Shown here: positions 3,740-35,583 of the stretch, piece by piece
How positions within the stretch are numbered: the stretch's first letter is position 1
Layout of the letters: each line of letters begins with the position of its first letter
Assembly (NCBI RefSeq): GCF_964188315.1
Contig: NC_135667.1
Span: forward strand, 10,168,001-10,232,000
Source: Podarcis muralis
Taxonomy: Eukaryota
Length of the DNA: 64,000 nucleotides
Direction: 5' to 3'
The notes under the pieces: generated by a model
Told to the model about the DNA's origin: nothing
The model's input: only the letters and a program-made list of their open reading frames with translations
The model's database searches: none
Translations under genes and position numbers: made by a program

Positions 3740-3922
3740 CCACAATTATGGGGGTTGTGGTCCAGCAACATTGAGAGGGTCACAGTTTCTCCATCCATCC
3801 TTTAAAACGGGAAGCATCTTGCCTAGGCAGAGAACAGAAAAAATAAACAAAGAGAAAAGATTCAGCTTCTACCCCAAAAAAGCTATTGACAACAGCAGCA
3901 AGGTCCATGATGATATCTCCAT
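3740..3922 (-). pseudogene. Possible TRAV relic (leader-like exon plus degraded FR1)
   Basis: ATG at 3922 encodes MEISSWTLLLLSIAFLG. A pyrimidine tract ends tgcctag at 3823, then GGA GAA ACT GTG ACC CTC TCA (GETVTLS) precedes an L2 fragment. Intron only about 50 nt, phases inconsistent, no RSS. Confidence 0.35.
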
Positions 3923-3988
3923 TGCTGCCCTTGGTTTAACTCTGCAGAAGCCACATGCAGCAACTAACAGCCAAGCCCTGTGTGCAGC

Positions 3989-3989
<1 letters not shown>

Positions 3990-4031
<42 letters not shown>

Positions 4032-4853
4032 TTATTATTTATATCCCACCCATCTGGCTGGGTTTCCCCAGCCACTCTGGGCGGCTTCCAACTGAATATT
4101 AAAAACAGTACAGCATCAAACATTAAAAACTTCCCTAAAGAGGGCTGCCTTCAGATGACTTTTAAAAGTAAAATAGTTGTTTATTGCTTTGACATCTGCT
4201 GGGAGGGCGTTCCACAGGGCAGGCGCCACTACCGAGAAGGCCCTCTGCCTGGTTCCCTGTAACCTCACTTCTCGCAGTGAGGGAACCGCCAGAAGGCCCT
4301 CGGCGCTGGATCTCAGTGTCCGGGCTGAACTATGGGGGTGGAGACGCTCCTTCAGGTATACTGGACCAAGGCCGTTTAGGGCTTTAAAGGTCAGCACCAA
4401 CACTTTGAATTGTGCTCGGAAACATACTGGGAGCCAATGCAGATCTCTCAGAACCGGTGTTATGTGGTCCCGGCGGCCACTCCCAGTCACCAGTCTAGCT
4501 GCTGCATTCTGGATTAATTGCAGTTTCCGGGTCACCTTCAAAGGTAGCCCCACGTAGAGCGCGTTGCAGTAGTCCAAGCGGGAGATAACTAGAGCATGCA
4601 CCACTCTGGCAAGACAGTCTGCGGGCAGGTAGGGTCTTAGCCTGCGTACCAGGTGGAGCTGGTAGACAGCTGCCCTGGATATAGAATTAACCTGTGCCTC
4701 CATGGACAGCTGTGAGTCCAAAATGACTCCCAGGCTGCGCACCTGGTCCTTCAGGGGCACAGTTACCCCATTCAGGACCAGGGAATCCCCCACACCTACC
4801 CGCCCCCTGTCCCCCAAAAACAGTACTTCCGTCTTGTCAGGATTCAACCTCAA
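3990..4853 (-). mobile_element. 5'-truncated L2-clade LINE (RT C-terminus, 3' UTR, (ATT)n tail)
   Basis: ORF 4853-4116 contains LNPDKTE, LGVILD, SRLDYCNALY, LQLIQNAAARL and LHWLPV. Possible TSD agctaat. Confidence 0.95.
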
Positions 4854-5039
4854 GCTAATTTTTAAGATGAGATGGAGTCACCATTTACCTTCTTTTCCTG
4901 CTATTGTTCTCAGACAATCAGAAGCAAGCCTTCTTGCTGCAACTGAACACAAGAGAACTGTAGGGGGGGAAATACAGCAGAAGATTCCAGCAAGATACAA
5001 CCTTGAGAGGCCCTTCTGTCTGTCCTGCATGTATCTCAT

Positions 5040-5185
5040 AGATAGAATCATAGAATTGCTGAGCTCGAAAGGACCATGAGGGTCATCTAGTCCAACCCCC
5101 TGCAATGCAGGAATCTTTTGCCCAACGTGGGGCTCAATCCCATGACCCTTGGGATTAAGAGTCTCATGCTCTACCAACTAAGCAA
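5040..5185 (-). mobile_element. Short SINE with tRNA-Lys(CUU)-like head and CR1-like 3' tail
   Basis: Minus strand: gcttagttggtagagcatgagactcttaatcccaagggtcatgggattgagccccacgttgggc, then gggttggactagatgaccc...attctatgattcta. Confidence 0.8.
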
Positions 5186-5452
5186 TATTCATGCTTGTTC
5201 AGTCTCTATGCAAACTAAGGCTTTTAGCATGGGGCACCAGCACTCTGGAATTGCTATTGAAATCAGACAGGCTGCTACAATTCTGATAGTTCTTTGCCTG
5301 CAGAGAATGATTTTGTTTCCCCAAGCATTTTTAGAGAATGAATTTGGTTCAGAGTTGCTTGCTTATTCCGTATATTATAAGCCTATGATGCCTTAATGGG
5401 TTTATTGTATGCCACCAAACTATCTTTCTGGTGAGTTGGTGGTTTCTAAATA

Positions 5453-5678
5453 CAGTGGTACCTCAGGTTAAGAACTTAATTCATTCTGGAGGTCCGTTCT
5501 TAACCTGAAACTGTTCTTAACCTGAAGCACCACTTTAGCTAATGGGGCTTCCTGCTGCCGCCGCGCCGCTGGAGCACGATTTCTGTTCTCATCCTGAAGC
5601 AAAGTTCTTAACCCGAGGTACTATTTCTGGGTTAGTGGAGTCTATAACCTGAAGCGTATGTAACCCGAGGTACCACTG
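5453..5678 (+). mobile_element. Tigger-like MITE
   Basis: Same TIRs, TA TSD. Confidence 0.92.
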
Positions 5679-5936
5679 TACTCTTATAAATAAATGTGAC
5701 ATTTATTGCATCCATTTAGTTCTGATCTGCCTTCTTGGATCAATAAGTGCCTTCTCTAGCTGACAGCAAACCAAGGCTGCTGGGGCAGTGACATGTCTGC
5801 CCTGATGGATGACCTTGAAGCTGAATTCATCCTTGAAGTTTCCAGTGATTGGACTACTTGAAATACAGAAGGCTGAAGCTGGTCGTGACCCTGAGAAAAC
5901 CTCTGCTCCACAAAGCCCTCATGAATGGCCTCTCCA

Positions 5937-5975
5937 GGTTTTGTGTCAGGCCAGGTGTGTCTTTGTGGCACTGTG
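5937..5975 (-). promoter_or_regulatory. 23-RSS of TRAV-b
   Basis: Consensus heptamer CACAGTG (5975-5969), 23-nt spacer, nonamer CACAAAACC (5945-5937). Confidence 0.93.
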
Positions 5976-7336
5976 GCTCCAGAGCACAGAAATAGACGGC
6001 AGAATCATTCAGCCTGGTATTCATCAGGTACAAGGAGGTGGTTTTCTTCTTTTTGTCCAGGCTGATTGTGAAGCGCTCATGAAACTCAGTTCCAGTCTGG
6101 ACCATCAAGTGTATAAACTGGAGCCGCCTGCCCAACTGCTGCCTGTACCACTGCAAGCTATATTCAGTTCCTTCGTAAGAGCAGTTGAGCTGGGCAGGTT
6201 CTCCCTCCTTGACAGAAGCAAACTGGACCTTCTGGGTCACAGAAGACTGGCCTGAAGTGCCTGGAACAGGAATTATGATTGAGAACATAAGAAGAGCCTG
6301 TTGGATAAGATCAGTGGCCCATCTATCATTATCATTCACCCTAAGTTCTCAGGATGGGTTAAAACAAATAAAACCCAATACTAACAACAGTTTAAAACAA
6401 ATAAGTATTAGTAGTAGTAATAATAATAATAATAGAAATAATAAATTAATTGCATTTATTCATTGCTTCCAGAAAGAAGAGGAAAACCTTACAAATACAT
6501 AAAAACACAAACAGCGTGAAAATTCAAAATACAAAAAAACTACCAGCGCTTATCCAACAACAATATAAATATTATGAATATCAGAGAAATAATTATTTAC
6601 GAAAAAGGAGGAGGAGGAGGAGGAGGTGGAAGAGGAGGAAAGGGCTCAGTTTTCTTTAGCTTTAATGCAGGGCTGGAAAACCTCTGCCCTTCCAGATGTT
6701 CAGCTGGGCCAAAACTACCATCATCTCTGATCAAGCCATGCTGGCAGCTGGGACTTGAAGCAGCAGCACCTGGAGGGCCAAAGGTCCCCTACACTTCCTT
6801 TACTGGGAAAAGTAGTCCAATCAAATCAACAGTTACTCAAAAGTAAGCCACACTGTGCCCAATGGGACTACATACCAAAGTAAATGGGGTACGAGAAAAT
6901 TGCAGCAGCTAAGCCTATGTTACATTTTCATCAGATTGCATCTGTTGCCTTCCTAAAAAAGAAGGATTTTAACCATATCTGCTCAAAAATAAATCCCTTT
7001 TAACTCGGTGGGATTTCCCCTCTGTTCGGTGGGAACTCTCTCTGTTTCTCATTTTTCCAGTCTTAAATTCAGCATTCCACATTTAGCAGAAGAAAATGAG
7101 GGTTCCAGCAAAGTGCCCGTGAATTCTCAGTTTTACTCAATTTCTTTCTAACTTTCATCTTTCTTTCTGTTACATCCATTGAAGAATCTGAACAAATATG
7201 GGTAAGATTGGGTCATGCCTAGAGCCCTGAATCACGAATGAGCTGGGATCCAGCTGTGTTAACCCTTTACTAGAGAGAAAATACCTGTGGAGAGAGCCAG
7301 GAGCAAAGGAATGGTGCGTCTCACCAGGGTCTCCAT
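5976..7336 (-). CDS. TRAV: Intact T-cell receptor alpha V gene (TRAV-b): leader exon 7336-7285, V exon 6260-5976
   Basis: Leader METLVRRTIPLLLALST+G (52 nt, phase 1, donor CAG|gtattt). Acceptor ttcctgttccag|GC. V reads GTSGQSSVTQKVQFASVKEGEPAQLNCSYEGTEYSLQWYRQQLG...DSAVYFCALE with no stops. Confidence 0.92.
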
Positions 7337-7439
7337 CTTCTTTTGGGTGACAGATGTGATGAATGTGCCTCAGCAAGTTTTATTTGCAGCAAGAGCTGTG
7401 GCACAGACCACAAACTTGTGGGTGGTTTCATGTTCCTCT

Positions 7440-8045
7440 CTCATGGGACCCAAGAAAATAGCACACTTTTTATATGCAACAGTGGCAGCTAGAGTAAGGT
7501 AAAGGTAAAGGTACCCCTGCCCATACGGGCCAGTTGTGACCGACTCTGGGGTTGCGCGCCCATCTCGCTTAAGAGGCCGGGGGCCAGCGCTGTCCGGAGA
7601 CACTTCCGGGTCACGTGGCAGCTAGAGTACTGGTGGCCAAAAACTGGAAGAGCAAGGAGACTCCCTCAATGTCAGAATGGCAAATTAAATTTTGGGAATA
7701 TATTGAACTAGCCAAGATGACAGCATCAATTAGAATGCAATCAAAACAAAAAATTAAGAAAGGAAATGAAGTGGGTTGAAGAATCCCACAGGATTAGGGT
7801 TGGGAACAGTAAATGTTCATCAAGCCCAACTGTTTACACTGTTCTTATATGGGCCTGTGAGAATGCTGGGAGGCCTCTTTCATACTAGTTCTTATACAAA
7901 AAGAGAAGGGTTAGTATAGGATTAGATGTGGGAAATCCGTATATATAATATATGTTATGCATAGTGTTGAAATTGTACGGGAACTAACATGCAATATGCA
8001 TTTAATAATAAATAAATAATAAATAAATAGTAAACTAAATAAAAG
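7440..8045 (+). mobile_element. L1-like LINE 3' fragment interrupted by a SINE
   Basis: FLYATVAARV|SINE|LVAKNWKSKETPSMSEWQIKFWEYIELAKMT, with an AATAA-rich tail. Confidence 0.7.
7497..7614 (-). mobile_element. Sauria SINE 3' fragment
   Basis: (ACCTTT)n tail; TSD gtggcagctagagta at 7482 and 7615. Confidence 0.9.
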
Positions 8046-8560
8046 GAAAATAGCACACTCTGTTACTCTTCCACCAAATGTGCAGAGCAAAGTCTGTTTT
8101 TTATGACTTAAAGGGAGGCTTTTATGACAAAATTTCAAAATGCCACCACTAAATCACAAGAAATATGTGGCTCAGACTGATATCTGATGATGACACAGAT
8201 TTATTGTCTGGCCTTGGGCAAATCACTTCTCTCTCAAGCAGGTTCCTATTTTATTCTTACTTGTTCTAAATCAGTGGTTCCCAATTAGGGGTCAATACAC
8301 CACCCAGGCCTATTTAGTGCAAAAGGCAGCCTGTGTGGATTTTCTCTCTCTTGTTTTCTGTGGGAAGCAATGTGGCTGCATTTTGGGGGTGGAAGGAAAC
8401 AGATGTACGGCAGAATCCTAATAAATTCAAAGGTTGGTCATTCCTATTGGGTCATCAGCAAGAATAAAAACCTCATTCGAAATAAGTACTGTATTTAACT
8501 AATTAATCTCTTAAACTAGTGCCCAGTACTTTTTTTTCAGGGGGTACTCAAGGGTATAAG

Positions 8561-8890
8561 GGGATGCAGGTGGCGCTGTGGTCTAAACCACTGAGCCTCT
8601 TGGGCTTGCCAATCAGAAGGTTGGCGGTTCAAATCCCCACAACGGGGTGAGCTCCCGTTGCTCTGTCCCAGCTCCTGCCAACCTTGCAGTTCAAAAGCAC
8701 ACCAGTGCAAGTAGATAAATAGGTACCGCTCTGGCAGGAAGGTAAACGGCATTTCCAGGCGCTCTGGCTTCCGTCACGGTGTCCCATTGCGCCAGAAGCA
8801 GTTTAGTCATGCTGGCCACATGAACCAGAAAGCTGTCTGTGGACAAACGCCGGCCCCCTCTGCCTGAAAGCAAGATGAACACTGCAACCC
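8561..8890 (+). mobile_element. Sauria SINE, near full length
   Basis: tRNA-like head ggtggcgctgtggtctaaacc, gtgcaagtagataaatagg core. Confidence 0.9.
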
Positions 8891-9813
8891 CTATAACAAT
8901 TTCATAGTGAGTAACAGCACCTTTTTTTCTAGAAGAAAATGCTAATGTCCCTTGTGGGCAGGAGCATCAACTCCAGGGGGCCCCAGGGCCTGGGCATCCA
9001 TAATTTTTATCCTGTGGGTGCCTGTCTTCCCCCCACCTCCCACTGCCAGCGGCCGCCCAACAACACCACTGTTTGTGGGTTGGGGAACTCTTGACTTCTC
9101 TACAGTTGGAATCAATGCAATCTGCAGCGCTAGAAGTCAATGAGATCAGTAGGTGGCAGCAGAGAGCCAAAATAAAAACCAGCAAAGAGCTGCTATAGCA
9201 TTTGACCTCAGACCAGGGATGGGAGGAATCTATTAGTTTCACTTTCTCTCTGCTTCTCATTTTTCCCGTCTTTCAACATCAGCCTGTGTGAATTATTCTG
9301 ATTTCTTTTCTTTTTTAAAGTCTTCATGAAAAACTTGTCAGCATTTTAGTCCATTTCTGTGTGTGAGTTTGCCCTAGATACACATTTTTGCAAGCAGTTT
9401 CCTCTAACATAATTATACATACGTTAAATGTATTGTATGCACACATTCCCCAAATGTGTGCTTTCACTATTATTAACATAGTTATATAACAGATTTTAAC
9501 TTCTTTGCAGTAGATTTGGTGTGCTGCTTATTTGATGTCAAGGACTGAGGCTGCAATCCTCTACTCACTGGGAATAAGTCCCTATTCACTGGGAATAAAT
9601 AACAATGCAGCCCTATACATAACTACTCAGACATAAAGCTTATTGGGTTCAAAATCTAAAACTTCTTAAATACAAAATGAATGCAAATTTATTATTTTAT
9701 TTCCCCTCCATTTAAGCTTTGTGTGTGTGTGTGTGTACATAGGAAGAAATGTTGGAGGGTATGGTAGTATGTCCCTATTTTCTTCAGATAAATGTTGTAG
9801 GGTATGGAATAGG

Positions 9814-10004
9814 TAAAGGTAAAGGGACCCCTGACCATTAGGTCCAGTCGTGGCTGACTCTGGGGTTGCGGTGCTCATCTCGCTTTATTGGCCAAGGGAG
9901 CCGGCGTACAGCTTCTGGGTCATGTGGCCAGCATGACTAAGCCGCTTCTGGCGAACGAGAGCAGCGCACGGAAACGCCGTTTACCTTCCCACTGGAGCGC
10001 TACC
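9814..10004 (-). mobile_element. Sauria SINE, 5'-truncated
   Basis: 15-bp TSD agggtatggaatagg at 9799 and 10005. Confidence 0.92.
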
Positions 10005-10473
10005 AGGGTATGGAATAGGATGTCCCTATTTCCATTGGATAAATGTTGGAGGTTATGCTAATTTATTACATATATTTTCATCACAGAAATGTTGGTACCA
10101 TACAGGATGGGATCCGTTCTGGAGTCCCGTCTGTAACGTGAAATGCCCACAACTCGAAGTGCTGTGTCTGCGCAGGCGCATGGCGCGATTTGGTGCTTCT
10201 GAGCATGTGTGAGCGGCGAAAGCCAGAAGTAACCCATTCTGGTATTTCCAGGTTGCCACAGGACGTAACGCAAAAAGACACAACATGGAGCGGATGCAAC
10301 ACGAGGTATGACTGTATTACGTAAAACAGGACATTGCCTGCAGGTCCTGCAATATAACTGATATTGTTATGAGGTCTGGGGGTGGTAGGCTGCATGCCTG
10401 GGCCCCCTTTTTATTCCAAGATCCAGCATGGAGACAATTCCTGGAATAGCCAGGCTAGCTTCCTGGTGAGGTA

Positions 10474-10814
10474 GGTAAATGTAAAGGGACCCCTGACCAT
10501 TAGGTCCAGTCGTGACTGACTCTGGGGTTGCGGCACTCATCTCACTTTATTGGCCGATTCAGCTGGCGTACAGCTTCCAGGTCATGTGGCCAGCATGACT
10601 AAGCCACTTCTGGCGAACCAGAGCAGCGCACGGAAACACCATTTACCTTCCCGCCAGAGCGGTACCTATTTATCTACTTGCACTTTGACGTGCTTTCGAA
10701 CTGCTAGGTTGGCAGGAGCAGGGACTGAGCAACGGGAGCTCATCCCGTCACGGGGATTCGAACCGCCGACCTTCTGATCAGCAAGTCCTAGGCCACAGTG
10801 CCACCCACGTCCCT
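10474..10814 (-). mobile_element. Sauria SINE, full length
   Basis: 14-bp TSD ttcctggtgaggta at 10460 and 10815. Confidence 0.95.
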
Positions 10815-11765
10815 TTCCTGGTGAGGTAATAGCCCCTAAGTATGGATCGCCAAGATAAAAAAAAAAGGAAGTGGCTCTGCCTGACAGCAAATGGGTGTGC
10901 ATAGGTATAGGGTGCCTGGAGCTCTCGAGGCTCCAGCCTCCACAACATTTGCCATGAAGGGGCTGGGCGCCCACAGTTTTTTGTGCCAGGGCTGCACACA
11001 GCATGGGGGCATGCACACCCGACATCAGCATGCCTGCCGGCGCATACACATGACATCAGCACACTCGCTGATGTGCGCAGGTGATGTCAGCATGCCACAG
11101 GGCATGCACACCAGAGGGCAGGCCGACGTCAGATGTTCGTGCACGGCCCTGGCACCAAAACGACATATACAGCATGTAGGCAAAACTGCAGTTGACCTAC
11201 ACACAAGTTTTAGAAACAGCAGGTCAGCAATTGTGTCCAAAATAATAATAATGGAGCAACTTGTTGCTAAACACTTTAATTCTGAGAACTGTAGCCTGTC
11301 GGACTTATCAATAATTCCAATAGAGATGCCAACAAAGCATCTCTAGCATATGCTAGACATATTAACACCACATGGCTTCAACCTGGAGGATAGTATCAGC
11401 ATTTCTTCAGCTCAGTGGATTGAAGGACTTCTGAGCTTTCCATTCCAAAAGTTCAGTACGTACTATTTTGGAAACAGCATCATTTGTATTGGAGCAACAG
11501 AGAGAGAAAGAGAGACTGAGGCTGAGACTGAGACTACAATATTTATTTTCTGTGATCCAGTTATGGCTCAAAGCTAATGTTTACTAAGTATTCAAGTGCC
11601 TGACATTAGGAACGTTGATAAAGAAGATTTATTTGACAACCATCCAATTTCAACTTGTATTTCTGCAGTTGATAAGGGAAAGTGTTTCCATGTTAACGTC
11701 TGATCCTCCACGGAGCTCATTAGAGGCACCCACAGGGATTTCCTAGCTCTGAACTTGGCTGAATC

Positions 11766-12160
11766 TTTAATTGTCTCATTTGTTTCTAATGGCTTTTGGG
11801 TCATGCAATTCCCCCTGTCTAATTAAACAGCGCCTTTAATTAGAGCCCTCCCCGGTGTCTAGTTAGGCAAGGCCTTGGGAGCGGCACCAGTGTTTGAATG
11901 CTTAAGGAGAGAATTCAAAGCCCCGTGCAATTTATGGCACAGCCGAAATGGAGGCGAGCCAAAGTCAAATCAAACAGTTTGAACTCCTGCCGTTCCCTCC
12001 AGGCCAATTACAGCATTAACAGGTAACAATAGGTCTATTTGAGAGGCAGCTGCGTGGTTCCTAGGCTTCGCGCACTCTCTGCAAGCATGCAGTGGGTTTA
12101 ATGTTCCGATTACACCAATCGGGGAGGTCACACGATTGACTTCATTAGCGCGGCAACCTC
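11766..12160. promoter_or_regulatory. Candidate OR-cluster enhancer (homeodomain-site cluster)
   Basis: TTTAATTG 11766, CTAATGG 11786, CTAATTAA 11819, TTTAATTAG 11835, CAATTA 12005, TTTAATG 12097, TCATTA (TAATGA on minus) 12142. About 15 CpGs and no recognisable repeat hallmarks. No perfect O/E (TCCCNNGGGA) site seen. Confidence 0.4.
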
Positions 12161-12318
12161 ACGGAATTCCTTTCCCCTGTGGGTTTCGCTCTCCAATGAA
12201 ATGAGCAAATGCTAAGCAGATGCTGAGGACAGGGGAAAGGGTATCGTGTAACATTTCTGAAGCAAATGGACTAGGGAGCCATGCTGGGGAATGAAAAACA
12301 AATGCCTTTGCTTCTCTT

Positions 12319-12978
12319 TGTGATAGGAATTTTATGGTCTTAGATATATGGTAATGTTCATAAGTGTACCAACCAAGCACATACATAGATCAGCACAGGA
12401 AGGCCAACCTGGAACCATTGATTCCTAAACCGAGCAAATGTTTTCTCTGCAAGGTCAAACTGGAAAAGCCTCCCCATTGTCTTTTCCTTCACAAATCCTG
12501 TCTTAAGGGTATGTCTGTGTTTGAATAGGGTGTGAGCCTGTGACATGGCCCAGAAACTAAGTATTTATCACTACAAAAGAACGGCCAGGCTCCCCAGGCA
12601 ATCCAATCAAGTAACCCGCCAGACAGGAGATAAACAACAACAGGAGAAAAACAATATTCAAATTTCTGTTTTAGACCGCCTTTTCTGTGATGTAGGTGTG
12701 ATGTATCTGAGGGGTGGTCTTAGGTTACACCCCTTTTGTGATGTATGTTTGATGTTTCTGGGGGTGGTCTTGATCTACAGGGTGGAAATTTCAAAAGTCT
12801 TTATAAGGCCTTGCACACCATTTTTCTGGGTCCCTCCTCTCTCCTGCAGGTTAGGGGAGCACCCTGTTGCAACAGATCAATAAAGGCCAAGCCTACAGGC
12901 TGCTGTTTTGCCACAAGTAATCCTGGTTGGTGTCTTTGTTTTTTTGTCCAAGGGAGCCCTCGGATTTTTCCGTTAACA
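12319..12978 (+). mobile_element. Probable solo LTR
   Basis: TG...CA ends, 4-bp TSD tctt, TATA-like ctttataagg, AATAAA at about 12878, and an internal roughly 51-bp direct repeat. Confidence 0.6.
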
Positions 12979-14132
12979 TCTTGGAAATGCTGCTGGCTCA
13001 GTAGTTCAGTGGTAGGGCCTCTGCCTTGTATGCAGGAGGTCACAGGTTCGATCCCCTGTGGGAAGGGCTGGGAGAGGTCCCCCCCTCAAACTCTGGAAAG
13101 TCTCTCCCAGAGAAGATACTGAGCGAGGTGAACCAGTGGTCTGACTCAGTGTACGGCAGCATCATGTGTTCCCATGTGCTGGCATGCTTAAGGGATAAAA
13201 CTAGTGAGGAAACAGGAAATAGAAATATTCCAAGATAAGAGCATTGGATAAACCCTGGTGGATCAAGCCAATCGACTAGTCTAGCAACATCTTCTCTCAG
13301 CAAGCCAACCAAATGACTATGGGAAGCCTGCAAGCAGAAACTGATCACAATACCACTCTCGCCACCTTTGATTCTCTGCAACTGCCAATCAGGGGCATCT
13401 GACAATGGAGTCAGGGGCTTCTTACCCATAGACGTTAGTTGCGCGGGGCGCCAGATTTTGGAGGGCACCACAGGCTGAGTGTCTGGGAAGGAGTATCAGG
13501 GCGCGCTCCCTTCTCCACTCTGGGGCGGCCCACTCCTCTCCTCTCAGGGTACTTCCTGGCATGCCCTCCCACCGGGGCTGCCTGGGTGCCTGATGGGCGT
13601 GATCAGGGGTGGGCACAGGGCGCCCCTCTCTGGCCACGTCGCTGCCTGTGTGCCTCCCTGTGGAGTCTGCGAGCAGAGTGGGGAAGTGTCCTGTGCGACC
13701 CTGGCGCTGAACGAGGATGGCACAGCTGGCAAGCCACCTGATCTGCATCTTACGTGCAGCGCCGAGTGTGCATCGGACCACACGATGTAAACGAGCCAGA
13801 CAGAAGTCCCCCCCCTTAAAAAACTCTGGGAAACGGGGGGGGGGGGCAGAGAGATATTTGCCCTGTATGGAGTAGACCATTGTGGTTAGGAGCCATTGAT
13901 AGCTTTATCCTCCATGTCTAATTCTCCTTTAAAACCATTTAAGTTGGTGGCCATTGCTACCTGTCTGAAGAAGGCAGGGTCAACCCATCCACGAGGCACA
14001 CAGGGATGGCTGTAGACAGGATTTCTGATTCAAAGAGAGTTGGGACAGGATTACCTTCGGGGTCCCTTCCAACCCCACAAATCTATGATCCTCACAGGCC
14101 TCTTGTGAGATCTCACCAGAACCTGGACGCTG

Positions 14133-14645
14133 CTGTTACAGATAGGTAGCCGTGTTGGTCTGCCATAGTCAAAACAAAACAAAAATTCCTTCCAGTAGCA
14201 CCTTAAAGACCAACTAAGTTAGTTCTTGGTATGAGCTTTCGTGTGCATGCACACTTCTTCAGATACACTGAAACAGAAGTTGCCAGATCCTTCTATATAG
14301 TGAGAAGGTGGGAAGGGGTTTTACTCAGAAGGGTGGTGGGAATGGGTGATTGGCAGATAGCTGTGATGAGCCTGTTGACGACTCTTAACGACTGCAATAG
14401 GTCTTACAGGAAAAAGCAAGGGGTGAGAAGGTGAAAAATGGCTTTGTCATGTATAATGAGCTAAGAATCCAATGTCTTTGTTCAGACCAGGTCTCTCCAT
14501 GGTTTTAAATTTGGTAATGAGTTGCAATTCAGCAGCTTCTCTTTCCAGTCTATTTCTGAAATTCCTTTGTAGTAAAACAGCTACTTTGAGATCTTGTATA
14601 GAATGTCCTGGGAGATTGAAGTGTTCTCCTACTGGTTTCTCTGTC
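14133..14645 (-). mobile_element. Penelope-like element fragment (GIY-YIG endonuclease end)
   Basis: Minus strand reads EKPVGEHFNLPGHSIQDLKVAVLLQRNFRNRLEREAAELQLITKF. Confidence 0.8.
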
Positions 14646-15148
14646 TTGCTAATTTCTGCCTCTGGTCATGCCTCCCACTTGCGTGGGTCCCAAACAAGGT
14701 TGCACAAAAGGGGCTGTGGCCCTGTTATTGGAACCAAATCCAGAACACTGTCCCTCCCAAGCCAGTAAAGAAACCGCAGGCGGAAAGCAAAAAGAGTTTA
14801 CTCAAGGCTGTAGCAGTGAGTCTTGGCAAGATATCTCCAAAAGACTGAGTGTAGAGCACACAAAGCACAAAGCATTTATACAATTGTAGCAAGCACACAG
14901 TTGCATGATTTCCTGAGTCACTTGTGGCTAGGAATGCATACTTAAGTCAGGTATTCATCTACTTGGCTACAGAAAAGTTACTTCCTGACCCTCCCTTATC
15001 TCGAGCTCAGGTGTAACTGGGCTTGTAGCTCCAAATGTGGGGACATCTTGCAGTTCTGACAGTGGGAACATGGTTCTGCAGACTCAACACTGTTGTGCTC
15101 CTAAACTTGTGCAGAGCCTATTCGCCCTGTGGAATCTGATCTCCCAAA

Positions 15149-15388
15149 CTATCGTTCCTGAGAAGCGGCATGCCTGTCGAACAATTTCCTCAATGCCCTT
15201 TCCACTTCCTTATTCCTCAGTGTGTATATGAATGGGTTCAACATGGGAGTGATCATGGTTTGGAACACAGCCAGTGCTCCATAGGTGGAGGCACTTGAAG
15301 ATGGATGTAAATATATAAAGACTGGAGGCGCATACTGGAGCAGCACCACAGTAAGGTGAGCACTGCAAGTGGAGAAGGCCCGCCGCCT
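15149..15388 (-). pseudogene. Olfactory receptor 3' fragment (TM6-TM7 and tail), paralogue of the OR10S1-like gene
   Basis: RRRAFSTCSAHLTVVLLQYAPPVFIYLHP...TPMLNPFIYTLRNKEVERALRKLFDRHAASQER*. Upstream it joins directly to sequence matching 19737 onward. Confidence 0.92.
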
Positions 15389-16625
15389 CTTCTCTCCTGC
15401 AGCTCCCAGCAACTGGAATTCAGGAAGAGATATTGTTAGGAGAACCTGACCTCCAGCATTGTTTAGGTATTGAACCATCATCTAGAGAGCTTCCCAGAAG
15501 GAGAACACATGCATATCTTAATAGAAGCATAGCTTTTGCATTCAGGTACACTCACCTCCTGTAAAGCTGCAGTGCTATGATGAATGTAGGCATTGTTTTC
15601 AATGTGGAACAGTTCCTGAGTGTCCACTAGTCTATATACTTGTACAGTCCAAACCACAGGGGGAAGGATACGCTCCATAGGGGGCTGAGAGGCCTTTGGC
15701 TGGTGCCCAGGGGATATCAGGAATGCTCCCTCCTTCGCTGGGTAGCCCCAATAACAGTAAGACAGGGAGGAAAACTACCATTTCAGTGGGAGCGGTTGAT
15801 GCCGAAGGTTTCACTGACTCATCATAATATTTTTTTTAGCCATAGGAAACTAATGGGCAAGGAGAAAGTCTAGCCAGCAACTTTCTCCCTGACTCAATCC
15901 ATGTGCATGGAGCTCTTCGTGGGGCTGAGTAGTGGCAGACCTTGGCACCTCAAATTTCAGCAGCACTCTGTGTGATGCCAAAATTCTGTGTGCCCCTCCC
16001 CCACCTCTTCCCTTCCATTCTACATCATAGTTGTGGCGCTCGCAAGGTTCTGTTGCCCAGTTCGAAAAACCGGTCATGTTTCCTGAAACCCATGTCTGGG
16101 CTGAGGAGCATTCAGCATTTGTTCCCCTTCCTCTCAGTTTGAAATGATACAGCCTTGAAATGAGAGGACGTGGTTTGGTTATATCCAGAACTGTGCTTAG
16201 CAAAACTGCTTGCCCCGCTCCCGCCCCCAACCAAGAACAATGGAACTTGCTGTTGGTTTTCCGAAGACCGGTTTTGAAATCTCAAAATTCCACAGTGCTC
16301 CTTATGTGAGGCTCTTAATTTATAAAGCCCTGTGCAAGTTGGGTCCAGGATAGGTTAAGAACTCCCTGAGCTCTTATCTCCCTGCCTTGAGATTACCCAG
16401 AGGGCATGGCTGTCATTCCTTACGCTACAGTGGCCCAGCTGGCTTCAATCAGAAGTCGGATATGTAGCCCTCATTTGCACTATACATTTAAAGAGATATC
16501 AAAGCACTTTAAACAGCCATGGCTTCGCCCAAAGAATCATGGGAATTCTGCTTTATTGAAGGTGCTGAGCATTGTTAGAAGACCCTTATTGCCCTCAGAG
16601 AGCTACCATTCCCAGAGTGCTTTAG

Positions 16626-16864
16626 TAGTTTGGATTTGATTTCCCGCTTTATCACTACCAGAAGGAGTCTCAAAGCGGCTAACATTCTCCTTTCCCTTCC
16701 TCCCCCACAACAAACACTTTGTGAGGTGAGTGGGGCTGAGAGACCTCAGAAAAGTGTGGCTAGCCCAAGGTCACCCAGCAGCTGCATGTGGAGGAGTGGG
16801 GACGTGAACCTGGTTCCCCAGATTACGAGACTACCGCTCTTAACCACTACACCACACTAGCTCT
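16626..16864 (-). mobile_element. MIR/Ther1-derived CORE SINE (Squam3-like)
   Basis: tRNA head gtgtggtgtagtggttaagagcgg and CORE gggtgaccttgggctag. Confidence 0.8.
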
Positions 16865-17595
16865 TTAACACTCAATTCCTCAATCCCTCTTCTCATGGAC
16901 TGCTGAGGATTGTAACTGGGAGAGTTCCTTGAGGAACTAGAGTTCACAGGATTCTTTGGAGGAAGGCAAGGCAGTTTAAAGTGATATCATACTGCTTGAA
17001 ATGTATAGTGCAGATTGAACTGGCGGCCATTGGATGAAGGAATCAAACTCAGACTATGTATCTCTCTATATATCTCAAATCGGAACAGAGTGGAAAGCAG
17101 GAAAGTGTTATAAATTAGGTGTCATGCAGGACTAAACAAGCTAGGATGCATATCCAAACAAGTGACACACACTCTGTTAAGTATAATTGTTTAATTCACA
17201 CTGAAATAGAGATTGCTTGTATGTATATTACTAAAGGTTTAACATTAGAAAATTCCATTGGAGTAAAGAGAAGGCATACCACAGCTAAGAGTAAGAACAT
17301 TCAAATCACTCACTACTATATTGTATGAAAGTTGGACCGCTCCAGTTCTGTCGCTCTATGTGTTTTTGCTTCTGGTCATGCCACCACTGGTATGTGTCCC
17401 TAAGAGGTTTTCACAGATGGGACTGTGGCCCTCATGTTGAAAATGGTTCCCCAACCCCTCTTCTATCCCGGTCCAATAAATCTGCTCCTAAATTTGTACA
17501 GAGCTTATCTGCCCTGTGGAATCTGACTGCCCAAACTATCGTTCCTGAGAAGCAATATGTCTCTTGAATGATTTCCTCAACGCTCTTTTCACTTC

Positions 17596-18477
17596 CTATT
17601 TCCGCAATGTGTATATGAATGGGTTCAACATAGGAGTGATGATGGTGTAGAAAACAGCCAGAGTCCCATAGGTGGAGGCACTTGAAGATGGACGCAAGTA
17701 TATAAAGACTGGAGGTCCGTAGTAGAGCAGCACCACTGTAAGGTGAGCACTGCAAGTGGAGAAGGCCCGCCGCCTTCCCTCCGTTGTTTGGATTTTCAAA
17801 ATGGCAGATGTGATGTAGGCATAGGAGATACATATGAGCACAAAGCAGCCGGCAGCCACGGCACCAATGTTGGCCAGTATGACGGCATGGTTCACAGCTG
17901 TGTCGGCACAGGCTAATTTGAGCACTGGTGGGATGTCACAAAAGAAGTAGTCCACTTGGTTGGGACCACAGTAGGGCAGACGGAACGTCAGGCTGGTATG
18001 GATAGCGGCATGAAAGGAACCAGTGAGCCAGGTCCCAGCTGTGAGACCAGAGCAGACCCTCCTGTTCATGAGTGTACTGTAGTTCAGCGGGCGGCAGATG
18101 GCAAGGTAGCGGTCATAAGCCATGACGGTGTAAAGGAAGCACTCGGTGCTTGCCAAAAAGTGGAAGGTATAGAGCTGGATGATGCAGCCTCCAAAGGAGA
18201 TGGTTCTGTAGCTGGACCTTATGAAGCCCATCAAGACTTTGGGCACTGTGACAGAGGAGAGACAGGTGTCTAGGAAGGAGAGGTGGCAGAGGAAGAAGTA
18301 CATGGGGAGACTATGGAGCTGGGGTTCAAACAAGATGGTGATCAGGATGAGGAGGTTCCCCATCACAGTCAGCATGTAGATGGCCAAGAAGATGAAGAAG
18401 AATAGAAGGGGGAGTTCGGCTGTGTTTGGCAACCCCTGCAGGATGAAGACCTTCACAGTTTGGTTGGCAGGGTCCAT
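17596..18477 (-). CDS. OR10S1-like: Olfactory receptor, OR10S1-like, 293 aa; premature stop removes the C-terminal tail
   Basis: Starts MDPANQTV. Motifs PMYFFLCHLS, MAYDRYLAIC, AFSTCSAHL, PMLNPFIYTLR. Diagnostic HFLASTECFLY, HAAIHTSLTFRL and IGAVAAGC resemble mammalian OR10S1 (from memory). TAG at 17598-17596, and the frame continues to the ancestral stop at 17538-17536. Confidence 0.9.
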   Translation of the reverse strand: MDPANQTVKVFILQGLPNTAELPLLFFFIFLAIYMLTVMGNLLILITILFEPQLHSLPMYFFLCHLSFLDTCLSSVTVPKVLMGFIRSSYRTISFGGCIIQLYTFHFLASTECFLYTVMAYDRYLAICRPLNYSTLMNRRVCSGLTAGTWLTGSFHAAIHTSLTFRLPYCGPNQVDYFFCDIPPVLKLACADTAVNHAVILANIGAVAAGCFVLICISYAYITSAILKIQTTEGRRRAFSTCSAHLTVVLLYYGPPVFIYLRPSSSASTYGTLAVFYTIITPMLNPFIYTLRK

Positions 18478-18618
18478 CTGATAGTACAGGAGGCAAGGAA
18501 CAAAGTGAGTAATCTGAACCGAAGGGCAAGACAAGATCAAAGGATAACCAAAGGATGTGAGAACATGCACGTTGCAACATGCAGTTCAGTGGCTCACCAC
18601 AAGGGGTAGTTACATATA

Positions 18619-18847
18619 CAGTGGTACCTCGGGTTAAGTACTTAATTCGTTCCAGAGGTCCATACTTGGTAACCTGAAACTGTTCTTAACCTGAAGCACT
18701 ACTTTAGCTAATGGGGCCTCCTGCTGCTGTCACGCCGCCAGAGCCCAATTTCTGTTCCTATCCTGAAGCAAAGTTCTAAACCTGAAGCACTATTTCTGGC
18801 TTAGTGGAGTGTGTAACCTGAAGCGTATGTAACCCGAGGTACCACTG
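18619..18847 (+). mobile_element. Tigger-like MITE
   Basis: Same TIRs, TA TSD. Confidence 0.92.
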
Positions 18848-18936
18848 TATACACAAAGGTTGGCAGTATGAGCCCTGCAGCTCCTAACAGGAAGAAAAGT
18901 AATTTAAGCATTCAAATGATGAAAGAAAATAATAAT

Positions 18937-19085
18937 NNNNNNNNNNNNNNNNNNNNNNNNNNNNNNNNNNNNNNNNNNNNNNNNNNNNNNNNNNNNNNNN
19001 NNNNNNNNNNNNNNNNNNNNNNNNNNNNNNNNNNNNNNNNNNNNNNNNNNNNNNNNNNNNNNNNNNNNNNNNNNNNNNNNNNNNN
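18937..19085. other. Assembly gap (149 N)
   Basis: Run of N next to an AAT repeat. Confidence 1.
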
Positions 19086-22942: not shown

Positions 22943-23881
22943 TCATTCAATTGGTGAGGACATTTTCCTGCTCCACAGCTTTCTTAATGCACACTTCATC
23001 TCCTTGTTCCTCAATGTATAAATGACGGGATTCAGGAGTGGGGTTACAGTGGTGTAGAACACAGCCACCACTCCGTCCAGTGGGTCTTCAGACCCTGGTC
23101 TCAGATAGATGAACACTAGGGGAACATAGTAAGTTATGACAACTGTGATGTGAGCAGCGCAAGTGGAGAATGCTCGGCGGCGTCCCTCAGCACTACGGAT
23201 CCTCAGGATTGCAGAGATGATGTACACGTAGGATGTGAGGATGAGGAAGAAGCAGGTCATGGCCAAGAAGCCAATGTCTACAAAGGTCACCATCTCATTG
23301 AGTGCCGTGTCAGCACAGGCCAGCTTAAGCACAGCGGGGATGTCACAGAAGATATAGCCCACTTGGTCCCCATGGCCATAGGGCAAGTGGAAGGTGAGAG
23401 TGGTCTGTATCATAGAGTGCAAGGAGCCCCCAAACCAGGTCCCAAAGGAGAGGCAGAGGCAAGCTTTATGGCTCATAATAGTGCCGTAACGGAGCGGCTT
23501 GCAGATGGCCAGGAAGCGGTCATAGGCCATGACGGTATAAAGGAAACATTCAGTGCAGCCCAGGAAGTGGAAGAAGAAGAGTTGGGTCACGCAACCACCA
23601 AAGGAGATGACCCCACCACCTTCAAGAAACCCAGCGACCACCTTGGGTACCACCACTGAGGAGACAGTCATATCCAAGAAGGACAAGTGGCAAAGGAACC
23701 AATACATAGGTTTGTGCAGCCGGGGCTCAAATGCCACTGCCAAGAGGATCATGAGGTTTCCTATGAAGGTGAGCAGGTAGATGAGCAAGAAGAAGAGGAA
23801 CAATGGGACTCGTAGTTCACGGGGATAAGGAAACCCGACAATGATGAAATGGTACTGTCCCGTTTGGTTTTCACACTCCAT
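22943..23881 (-). CDS. OR10G6-like: Olfactory receptor, OR10G6-like, 312 aa, intact
   Basis: Single-exon 7TM ORF with LHKPMYWFLCHLSFLDM, MAYDRFLAIC, DIGFLAMTCF, PLDGVVAVFYT and NPVIYTLRNKEMK, close to mammalian OR10G6 as recalled. Confidence 0.95.
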   Translation of the reverse strand: MECENQTGQYHFIIVGFPYPRELRVPLFLFFLLIYLLTFIGNLMILLAVAFEPRLHKPMYWFLCHLSFLDMTVSSVVVPKVVAGFLEGGGVISFGGCVTQLFFFHFLGCTECFLYTVMAYDRFLAICKPLRYGTIMSHKACLCLSFGTWFGGSLHSMIQTTLTFHLPYGHGDQVGYIFCDIPAVLKLACADTALNEMVTFVDIGFLAMTCFFLILTSYVYIISAILRIRSAEGRRRAFSTCAAHITVVITYYVPLVFIYLRPGSEDPLDGVVAVFYTTVTPLLNPVIYTLRNKEMKCALRKLWSRKMSSPIE

Positions 23882-30171: not shown

Positions 30172-31098
30172 TCAGGAAGATATCTTCCTAAATACAAGTT
30201 TCTTCATTGCCCTTTTGATTTCTTCACTTCTCAAGGAATAGATGATGGGGTTTAGTGCAGGGGTGATAGCTGTGTAAAAAATGGACATCACCTTCTGAAC
30301 CGAGTTGGTTGTGGCTGGCTGCAAATATATGAGGACACAAGGGACGTAGAGAGTCAAGACCACGATGAGGTGGGCTGTGCAGGTGGAGAAAGCTTTTCTC
30401 TTTCCTTCCTCCGAGCGCATCTTCAGTATGGTGGCAACAATATGTGCATAGGAGCCCGCGATCAAGATGAAGCAACAGAGGGCAACCACGCCAACATTGA
30501 TCATGATGACAACTTTGTTTATCGATGTGTCAGCACAGGCCACTTTGAGCAAAGGTGGGACATCACAGAAGTAGTGCTCAAGCTCATAAGGGCCACAGTA
30601 AGGGAGACGGAAAGTGAGGACGGTCTGAATAGTGGAATGGATGGTCCCGACGAGGCACGTTCCAGCCATGAACTGGGCACAAACCATCTTGCTCATAATG
30701 GAAGAGTAGCGAAGGGGGTTGCATATGGCCACATAACGATCAAAGGCCATGACAGTGAGGAGAAAGCCCTCTGTGCCCCCACAGAAGTGGAAGAAGTAAA
30801 GCTGAGCCACACAGCTCTGGTAAGAGATGCTTTGAGAGCCATTGATGAATCCAGCCATCATCTTCGGAACGGTGGTAGTGCAGTAACATACATCTAAGAG
30901 GGACAGTTCAGAGAGGAAGTAGTACATAGGGGAGTGGAGCTGAGGACTGAGGCGGATTGTGAAGAGTATGACGGCATTCCCGAGCAACGTCAAGAGGTAG
31001 ATGGCAAGAAAGAGAGTGAAAAAGATCTGAAGACCCTGGACTTCAGAGAAACCCAGGAGAGTGAATTTAATCACAAGAGTGAAGTTGTCTTTCTCCAT
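30172..31098 (-). CDS. Class II olfactory receptor, 308 aa, intact
   Basis: LHSPMYYFL, MAFDRYVAIC, HYFCDVPPLL, KAFSTCTAHL, PALNPIIYSLR. Confidence 0.95.
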   Translation of the reverse strand: MEKDNFTLVIKFTLLGFSEVQGLQIFFTLFLAIYLLTLLGNAVILFTIRLSPQLHSPMYYFLSELSLLDVCYCTTTVPKMMAGFINGSQSISYQSCVAQLYFFHFCGGTEGFLLTVMAFDRYVAICNPLRYSSIMSKMVCAQFMAGTCLVGTIHSTIQTVLTFRLPYCGPYELEHYFCDVPPLLKVACADTSINKVVIMINVGVVALCCFILIAGSYAHIVATILKMRSEEGKRKAFSTCTAHLIVVLTLYVPCVLIYLQPATTNSVQKVMSIFYTAITPALNPIIYSLRSEEIKRAMKKLVFRKISS

Positions 31099-34653: not shown

Positions 34654-35583
34654 TCAAGAAAACACCTTCTTGAATGCCAGTTTCTTCACCATCTTCTTGA
34701 TTTCTTCATTTCTCAAGGTGTAGATGATGGGGTTCAGGGCAGGTGTCACAGATGTGTAAAAGAGGGCCACAATGTTCAGGGCAGAGTGGTTGGTGGATGG
34801 CTGCATGTAAATGAATATGCAAGGGCCATAAAGGAGGAGGACTACAGTGAGGTGAGATGCGCAGGTGGAGAAGGCCTTCCTCTTCCCTTCCTCAGAGCGC
34901 ATCTTGAGAATTGTGGTGGCAATGCGGATATAAGAACCAAGGATCAAAGCAAAGCTGCTCAGTGCCACAACACCAATGTTCACTGTGACCACGGTCTCAT
35001 TCAGAGAGGTTTCTGCACAGGCTACCTTCAGTAAGGGCGGGACATCACAGAAATAGTGGTCAAGTTTGTAAGGCCCACAGTAAGGGAGGCGAAACGTGAG
35101 CACAGTCTGAAGAGTCGAATGAAGTGCCCCCACCAGGCAGGTTGCAGTCACCAGTCTGATGCAAGACACGTTGCTCATGATCCCAGAGTAGTGGAGTGGA
35201 TCACAGATGGCCACATAGCGGTCATATGCCATGACAGTGATCAGGAAACACTCGGTGCCTCCAAAGAAGTGGAAGGCATAGAGCTGAGCCACACAGCCCT
35301 CAAAGGAAATGGCTTGGGAACCAGTCAAGAAACTGGTCAGCATCTTGGGCACGGTGGTGCTGGAATAAAGTACATCCAGGATGGAAAGCTCGCCAAGAAA
35401 ATAGTACATGGGGGAATGGAGCACAGGGCTGAACCAGATGGTGAGGAATATGAGGATGTTTCCTAGAAGAGTCAACATGTAGATGAAAAGGAAGAGCAGG
35501 AAAAAGAGGAGCTGGAGCTCCAGCACATCAGAAAACCCAGAGAGAGTGAACTGAATCCCCACAGTCAGGTTGGGTTTCTTCAT
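34654..35583 (-). CDS. Class II olfactory receptor, 309 aa, intact; close paralogue of 30172-31098
   Basis: LHSPMYYFL, MAYDRYVAIC, KAFSTCASHL, PALNPIIYTLRNEEIK. Confidence 0.95.
   Translation of the reverse strand: MKKPNLTVGIQFTLSGFSDVLELQLLFFLLFLFIYMLTLLGNILIFLTIWFSPVLHSPMYYFLGELSILDVLYSSTTVPKMLTSFLTGSQAISFEGCVAQLYAFHFFGGTECFLITVMAYDRYVAICDPLHYSGIMSNVSCIRLVTATCLVGALHSTLQTVLTFRLPYCGPYKLDHYFCDVPPLLKVACAETSLNETVVTVNIGVVALSSFALILGSYIRIATTILKMRSEEGKRKAFSTCASHLTVVLLLYGPCIFIYMQPSTNHSALNIVALFYTSVTPALNPIIYTLRNEEIKKMVKKLAFKKVFS

Follow-up and report, generated by a model that had tools for sequence, protein, structure and literature searches.

A 64-kb stretch of Podarcis muralis DNA (the window, in whose coordinates all positions are given) covers the place where TRAV-like V segments meet a cluster of olfactory receptor (OR) genes, and a conserved non-coding element (CNE) of about 690 bp between the two is the subject of this analysis. 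Only TRAV, OR and V2R genes were found in the window, with no non-receptor gene among them. An earlier note on this DNA had singled out the segment 11766-12160, between the last TRAV and the first OR, as a candidate OR enhancer similar to the mouse H element and the Greek Islands. Its location was as described: a V-set domain at 5854-6339 lies on one side and OR genes from 15149 onwards on the other, and the segment falls inside the 8.8-kb gap between the nearest V segment and an OR relic. From the element it is 2.8 kb to this relic and 5.3 kb to the first intact OR of a four-gene family-10 cluster. The latter (17599-18477, minus strand) is 100% identical to the 'olfactory receptor 10S1-like' protein of P. 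muralis.

The loci used for comparison were taken around orthologues of the OR10S1-like protein and included 10 kb of flank in either direction, and alignments of five squamates (A1), of eight species (A2) and a further one (A3) were built. The Zootoca locus stops about 700 bp short of the element owing to the 10-kb flank, and the species compared are thus all from outside the Lacertidae. By blastn, Podarcis and Elgaria (Anguidae) matched at 11590-12273 with 70.9% identity over 697 bp (E 7e-72); the other matches between window positions 5000-19000 and Elgaria were OR coding DNA and two short non-coding stretches (about 150 bp and 76 bp). Orthologues were also found by blastn in Rhineura (76%, E 3e-138), Tiliqua and Eublepharis, and a weak match was obtained in Liasis, a python. 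In alignment A2, identity to Podarcis was 76% for Rhineura, 68% for Elgaria, 66% for Tiliqua and 64% for Eublepharis, and the flanks could not be aligned. A profile of the five squamates in A1 detected the element in Varanus (E 2e-111) and in two pieces in Liasis (E 4e-38 and 3e-23). The same squamate-only profile matched the turtle Carettochelys (L007:12228-12576, E 8.6e-22), with the match confined to the core, and the A2 profile matched Crotalus in two pieces (E 3e-55 and 2e-36). In Alligator sinensis a weak match was present at the expected place and on the expected strand (L011:15214-15405; E 4e-4 in a search of all loci and 4e-5 in that locus alone), and its alignment shows landmark blocks shared with the other reptiles.

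The arrangement around the element was also constant. The order OR10S1-like gene, CNE, TRAV-like segment on one strand was found in Rhineura, Elgaria, Varanus, Tiliqua, Eublepharis, Liasis, Crotalus, Carettochelys and Alligator. Across the species examined the element is located 1.2-5 kb downstream of the last OR and always has the same orientation to it. Downstream of the element, tblastn detected a TRAV-like V segment in eight loci, and the turtle has an annotated V-set gene there. The element aligned across eight other reptiles, and weakly in the alligator, and the flanking DNA did not; it can therefore not be described as no more conserved than its flanks. Conservation is organized in short blocks between variable spacers. 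The extent given in the earlier note needs widening, as 11766-12160 is inside the conserved element but represents only its middle part.

A coding function was rejected: at least four stop codons were present in every frame in six species, and only 1-4 of 9-18 pairwise indels were multiples of three. Similarity to OR or TRAV proteins was searched for within the element by tblastn, and the best match had an E of only 3.7. The element is alignable between lineages in which neutral DNA is saturated, is non-coding and occurs once in the window, as is characteristic of a CNE. Geckos are separated from other squamates by about 200 million years, and lepidosaurs from turtles and archosaurs by about 280 million years, on commonly cited dates, implying an age of at least about 280 million years for the element. 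A single-copy non-coding element of about 690 bp held at the OR/TRAV boundary across reptiles is the robust result of this work. Judged from its sequence and position, 11631-12317 is probably a cis-regulatory DNA module of deep conservation, located where the TRA-linked family-10 OR cluster of reptiles borders the TRAV array.

Several properties ascribed to the segment 11766-12160 proved to be peculiar to Podarcis. The 15 CpGs are present (observed/expected ratio 0.65 at a GC content of 0.48, compared to a ratio of 0.29 for the window), but they are not conserved: over the whole element the ratio is 0.53 in Podarcis versus 0.15-0.42 in the seven A2 orthologues. At least 15 CpGs also occur in 5% of all 395-bp windows, in 13 blocks across the 64 kb. 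With a GC content of 0.48 and orthologues at 0.15-0.42, the segment is not a CpG island in the sense of a stretch of at least 200 bp with GC of at least 0.5 and a ratio of at least 0.6 that is kept in orthologues. Likewise, the palindrome CCGATT-ACACC-AATCGG at 12106-12122 is exact in Podarcis, but the other species read CAATTACACCAATC-like sequence there. An A-to-G change in Podarcis (CAATTA to CGATTA) gave rise to the palindrome and to one CpG. Since CpG richness and palindrome are both specific to Podarcis, neither is part of the conserved design.

The statement that the segment carries no hallmarks of a repeat held up: the window contains no second copy of it, it was not recognised as a transposable element, and its depth is zero in the runs that map to repeats. 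Four small public runs, each containing a few percent of the words of 11500-12500, held interspersed repeats only. Their depth reached very high values at 9667-10000 and 10335-10835 and moderate ones around 12340-13006 and 14009-14500, but was zero throughout 10836-12171 in all four, which makes 11766-12160 the right-hand part of a 1.3-kb island free of repeats. The two stretches of very high depth belong to one interspersed repeat of very high copy number, whose end is tRNA-like, of the GGTTCGAACCC type. This repeat is extremely abundant in the small runs, which probably derive from RNA, and also in one run that is labelled as coming from a second organism.

All homeodomain cores named in the earlier note were recovered, namely CTAATTAA (11819-11826), TTTAATTAG (11835-11843), CAATTA (12005-12010) and TTTAATG (12097-12103), as was TAATGA on the minus strand, read as TCATTA at 12142-12147. 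In total, 11766-12160 contains six AATTA/TAATT and four TAATG/CATTA matches. About eight homeodomain cores are present in Podarcis, a count that ranks in the top 1.3-3% of 651-bp windows in the 64 kb. Four to six of the cores are conserved, and they sit in the best-conserved blocks of the element (Table 1). At site A, the core is intact in Eublepharis, which reads TTAATTAA, Varanus has CTTATTAA, and the spacing varies between species by a single nucleotide. In the turtle, TAATTA has been lost, and the O/E-like TCCCCAGGGT stands at this place. Site B (TTCCCT...GG.CAATTA) is ungapped and invariant in five lizards and recognisably kept in the turtle, with an Ebf score of 5/8 in Podarcis and 6/8 in Elgaria and Tiliqua. 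At the position of site C, Liasis reads TAATTA G ACCCTAGGGA, which scores 7/8. The two snakes, Liasis and Crotalus, share the loss of the TTTAATTG core, of the TCCCC of site A and of the TAATTAGAG core, and Liasis has also lost site B. In the right module, an E-box is followed by a partly conserved RUNX-like heptamer. As a separate observation, both snakes carry an insertion resembling a short interspersed element (…CCAGCATGCTGGCTGGGGAATTCTGGGA…GAAGTCCAC…) in the middle of the element (L006:13700-13850 and L010:12330-12930), of which a related copy is found at L006:9482-9557.

Table 1. Features of the Podarcis muralis window at the OR/TRAV boundary. Positions are window coordinates.
Feature	Position	Strand	Remarks
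Whole CNE, about 690 bp	11631-12317		Eight-species nhmmer profile matches once in the window, E 7e-186
Core module	11655-12030		Squamates and turtle, probably alligator
Right module	12040-12300		Squamata only: aligned in 7/7 squamates, undetected in turtle
Homeodomain site GAGCTCATTAGA (CTAATGAGCTC on minus)	11713-11724	-	Identical to the Lhx2 electrophoretic mobility shift assay (EMSA) site of the mouse Greek Island Rhodes
Homeodomain site TTTAATTGTCTC	11766-11777	+	TTAATTGTC identical in six lizards; TTAATTGT also in turtle; lost in both snakes
Site A, TCCCC half-site beside CTAATTAA (ATTCCCC...CTAATTAA)	11808-11826	-	CTAATTAA kept in 5/7 A2 squamates
Homeodomain site TTTAATTAGAG	11835-11845	+	TAATTAGAG (11837-11845) in 4/7 squamates
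Site C, TAACTA + G + ACACCGGGGA	11849-11865	-	Ebf-like 10-mer, 6/8, composite spacing
Site B, TAATTG + G + CCTGGAGGGA (TTCCCTCCAGGCCAATTA)	11994-12010	-	Homeodomain core and Ebf-like site at the published 1-bp spacing
Podarcis-specific palindrome over ancestral CAATTA homeodomain core	12106-12122		Other species CAATTACACCAATC
AGGTCA nuclear-receptor half-site	12125-12130	+	GAGGTCA identical in 6/7 squamates; Eublepharis GGTCAC offset in the alignment
TCATTAG (CTAATGA on minus)	12142-12148	-	Kept in 4/7 squamates
E-box CAGATG	12217-12222		Invariant in 7/7 squamates
Block GTATC(A/G)TGTAACATTTC (GTATCATGTAACATTTC)	12240-12257		Highly conserved, mean identity 0.77 across squamates
TRAV-like V-set segment	1971-2333	-	WYRQ...YFCA signature
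Nearest TRAV-like V segment	5854-6339	-	Pfam V-set E 1.9e-13; translation with ...WYRQ...YFCA
Nearest OR, a 5'-truncated relic	15149-15481	-	Pfam 7tm_4 over the C-terminal part only; orthologue is an intact Zootoca gene
First intact OR, OR10S1-like	17596-18477	-	Pfam 7tm_4
Four intact family-10 ORs	34654-35583, 30172-31098, 22943-23881, 17596-18477	-	Named OR10G7-, 10G4-, 10G6- and 10S1-like, respectively

The strongest single motif result lies just outside 11766-12160 and concerns the site identical to that of Rhodes, whose Lhx2 EMSA probe sequence was taken from supplementary file 7 of PMC5608512. Exact words shared with this probe were a 12-mer in Podarcis, a 15-mer in Rhineura, 10-mers in both snakes and a 9-mer in the turtle, and none of 188 background windows of 650 bp shared a word of at least 10 bases. 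The composite motif of Lhx2 and Ebf consists of two sites 'stereotypically separated by 1bp' (PMC11643329), as in the example of Sfaktiria, TAATTG-A-TCTCCAAGGA (PMC5608512). To score this spacing, the 10-mer following TAATTR plus one base was compared with TCCCNNGGGA, with 309 kb from the window and the loci, the element excluded, as background. A score of at least 5/8 was reached by 18% of 49 sites in ten orthologous elements versus 1.6% of 319 background sites, and a score of at least 6/8 by 6% versus 0%. The matching sites were the homologous sites A, B and C. Ebf-like 10-mers scored 5-6/8 in Podarcis, 7/8 at site C of Liasis and, by eye, 7/8 at site A of the turtle, and only the TCCC/GGGA half-sites are conserved. 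Low-scoring composites have been described as having 'degenerate Ebf motifs' yet preserved spacing, a description that the Ebf-like sites found here fit. Similarity to the OMP Ebf probe was no better than background. The published degenerate composite pattern (PMC11643329), run with fuzznuc, gave 222 matches in the 64 kb (3.5 per kb) and was set aside as too loose to inform. The homeodomain sites are thus well supported, at least one of them being of Lhx2 grade by sequence identity, while the evidence for an Ebf component is suggestive.

The reading we favour, as a tentative one that could well be correct, is that the element acts as an OR-cluster enhancer of the kind of H, P, J and the Greek Islands, bound by Lhx2-type and Ebf factors. 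Its conserved cores TAATTG, TAATTA and CTAATGAG would be bound in olfactory sensory neurons by a LIM-homeodomain factor of the Lhx2 type, and Ebf (O/E) proteins would bind the adjacent TCCC/GGGA half-sites. The element, once bound, would remain accessible and raise the probability with which the nearby OR10G/S-like genes are chosen. The bound factors, the action in olfactory neurons and the ORs as targets are inferred. The element is intergenic and lies at the edge of a four-gene family-10 cluster, with the same placement in nine other reptile loci (weakly in the alligator), and it contains multiple homeodomain sites that are Lhx2-type by sequence. The cores of H, P and J, of 187-430 bp, combine multiple homeodomain sites with neighbouring O/E-like sites (PMC7804114). 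The observation made in the earlier note is confirmed, and its interpretation as an enhancer is partly supported.

A number of findings weigh against the enhancer interpretation. In the spacing test the species are homologous and their counts non-independent, so that the result reflects a retained arrangement rather than independent enrichment; Podarcis on its own has one strict site at 5/8, which is not significant. The full O/E palindrome is absent from the Podarcis element, as the earlier note had already conceded in reporting no perfect O/E site, and the Ebf-like scores there are only 5-6/8. The degenerate composite pattern was not enriched in the element, where its one match falls on a non-homeodomain sequence, and site B was no more similar to the Sfaktiria composite 24-mer than background. 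Conserved elements rich in homeodomain sites are also typical of developmental enhancers unrelated to olfaction. Furthermore, conservation of this depth is unusual, the deepest reported for an OR enhancer in the literature examined, that of J, being mammal-wide (PMC7804114, PMC5638857). Finally, the snakes lost several homeodomain and TCCC sites with the adjacent ORs intact, a decay that counters, mildly, an indispensable role in OR regulation. It may reflect a generally fast lineage or relaxed constraint. Since the limbless Rhineura keeps the element best (76%), the decay in snakes is not tied to the loss of limbs or eyes.

Three of these points, namely the likeness to developmental enhancers, the depth of conservation and the decay in snakes, also argue for the most serious alternative, in which the CNE is a bystander, a developmental or neuronal enhancer of a more distant non-OR gene that occupies a syntenically stable spot by chance. 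Single-copy, homeodomain-rich CNEs that have persisted for hundreds of millions of years are a hallmark of developmental enhancers, and the invariant E-box CAGATG together with the AGGTCA half-site would fit many neuronal enhancers. Against this, the 64-kb window contains no non-receptor gene, in every species examined the distance from the element is 1.2-5 kb to the last OR and a few kb to a TRAV-like segment, and Ebf-like half-sites are enriched at the composite spacing. Rhineura is reduced-eyed as well as limbless, and its retention of the element speaks against a limb or eye enhancer that disappears when those organs do. We regard the bystander explanation as unlikely, although it retains some weight.

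The neighbourhood on the other side would be invoked if the element regulated the TRA locus in thymocytes, for instance as a distal V-region enhancer or as a promoter that serves germline transcription or accessibility where the TRAV array has its 5' end. It is always located just upstream of the first TRAV-like segment in fixed orientation, a Myb-like AACNG core is conserved, and in Rhineura, Varanus and Liasis the right module contains a CAGGTG/CAGCTG E-box followed by a RUNX-like TGYGGTY. However, the RUNX-like site is missing in Podarcis, which reads TGCGTGGTT, and in Elgaria, Tiliqua and Eublepharis, and the turtle lacks the right module as a whole. Homeodomain cores, which make up the best-conserved blocks, are atypical of T-cell receptor enhancers, and no site matching a CTCF consensus with three or fewer mismatches was found in the element. 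No comparable element is known to us from the 5' end of the mammalian TRA locus, and none was found in the literature searched. A function at the TRA locus is accordingly quite improbable.

It is very unlikely that the element is an exon or gene of a non-coding RNA, or an unannotated untranslated exon. Being conserved, non-coding and single-copy would suit such a role, but no Rfam family matched the element at E up to 1, compensatory changes were found in only 16 of 140 predicted pairs with many pairs broken, and the covariation term of RNAalifold was unfavourable (+9.8 kcal/mol). None of the public runs recorded as RNA contains the stretch, the four small runs that are probably RNA have zero depth over 10836-12171, and conservation comes in short motif-like blocks with variable spacers. 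To the idea that the segment lacks a function, being an old repeat or a set of AT-rich motifs clustered by chance, practically no credence can be given: its CpG and homeodomain counts each rank only in the top 1-5% of windows, but it is single-copy, and the orthologues at the same locus in eight other species (E 1e-22 to 1e-240) and weakly in the alligator, with flanks that cannot be aligned, already contradict it.

Beyond the element, the window offers several further observations. Directly after the OR cluster, at 40288-62968 on the plus strand, several V2R-type genes are present with exons matching Pfam ANF_receptor and 7tm_3, and the order on the chromosome is therefore TRAV, OR, V2R. In the region of the OR relic (14647-15481, minus strand) the last third of the coding sequence remains in Podarcis. 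The orthologue in Zootoca (L001:10001-10942) is intact, and relative to it Podarcis is missing about 1.2 kb, including the first 700 bp or so of the coding sequence. Just upstream of the relic, a second small non-coding match between Podarcis and Elgaria was found (15509-15660 versus L002:7746-7894, 71% over about 150 bp). In Elgaria it sits about 2.1 kb upstream of the start codon of the OR10S1-like gene, and it may represent an OR promoter or a 5' non-coding exon. At the TRAV end, a run of N (149 N in the window) falls within a retroelement-like region at about 3771-4853, where an open reading frame of 245 amino acids (4116-4853, minus strand) has no match in Pfam.

OR enhancers have been defined almost entirely in mouse, and the element described here provides a concrete, small and alignable candidate in reptiles. 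In the literature searched, no report of a comparable element was found. Should it prove to be an olfactory enhancer, sauropsids would have conserved the cis-logic of OR choice down to an individual element, whose decay in snakes would be informative. If it is not, an unusually old element lies between two of the fastest-evolving gene families of vertebrates and needs an explanation of its own.

The system to which the locus invites comparison is the mouse H element. The listed position of H is mm10 chr14:52547909-52548295, and one strong and four permissive composites are given for it. Seven ORs spread over 141 kb are under its control, and its distance from Olfr1507, on the upstream side, is 75 kb (PMC5638857). 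The interval between TRAV1 and TRAV2 holds Olfr1509, Olfr1508 and Olfr1507 in mouse, and in human, OR10G2 and OR4E2 are found among TRAV1-1, TRAV1-2 and TRAV2 (PMC4574546). H probably lies on the TRAV2 side of Olfr1507. The mouse H cluster presumably includes family-10 ORs, as the lizard cluster does. The lizard element and H both lie where a TRA-linked OR cluster meets TRAV segments (PMC4574546, PMC5638857), and in both, multiple homeodomain sites are packed into a core that measures a few hundred bp; for the neighbouring O/E-like sites of H (PMC7804114), the Ebf-like half-sites of the lizard element are candidate counterparts. In contrast to H, which is 75 kb 5' of its nearest OR, the lizard element lies 3' of the nearest ORs at a distance of 2.8-5.3 kb, and these are OR10S/G-like, not OR4E-like. 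The extended homeodomain motif AACTTTTTAATGA, common to H, P and the P3 promoter (PMC7804114), is absent from the lizard element, where the best matches, scored by eye in A2 and A3, were 8/13 in squamates (GAATCTTTAATTG) and 9/13 in the alligator. The proposal of the earlier note that the element is a positional equivalent of H thus stands as far as the comparable OR/TRAV neighbourhood is concerned, but not with regard to its close 3' position and the lack of AACTTTTTAATGA.

In mammals, a profile search within 10 kb on either side of the bat OR10G2 gene (L012), which has a TRAV-like segment nearby, gave no match. The OR10G2-like locus of the possum Trichosurus (L009) lies inside a gene model of the Tim17 family and has no TRAV-like segment within 10 kb, from which it follows that the gene name does not imply linkage to TRA. 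That the element is the sauropsid orthologue of mammalian H, a single OR-choice enhancer that has stayed at the OR/TRAV boundary for the more than 300 million years since the amniote ancestor and has diverged past simple detection in mammals, is improbable. If true, no older OR enhancer would be known, and there would be direct evidence that Lhx2/Ebf-based OR choice at this cluster predates mammals. The hypothesis that enhancer-based OR choice is older than mammals is now attached to a real, deeply conserved element.

The 63 Greek Islands, the OR enhancers of mouse, resemble the lizard element in being intergenic in or at the edge of an OR cluster and in having a core of about 400 bp. A further likeness is the Lhx2-type site identical to that of Rhodes, and a possible one lies in the homeodomain and Ebf-like sites at 1-bp spacing, with degenerate proximal Ebf halves. 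Unlike the Greek Islands, none of which is reported as conserved outside mammals in the literature examined, the lizard element is conserved across sauropsids. The J element, the enhancer of class I ORs, differs in that it controls class I genes over 3 Mb and carries AAACTTTTC, whereas the lizard element is without AAACTTTTC and lies beside class II family-10 genes. J resembles the lizard element in being deeply conserved, from platypus to human, and its orthologues were also identified and validated by nhmmer profile and conserved synteny (PMC5638857).

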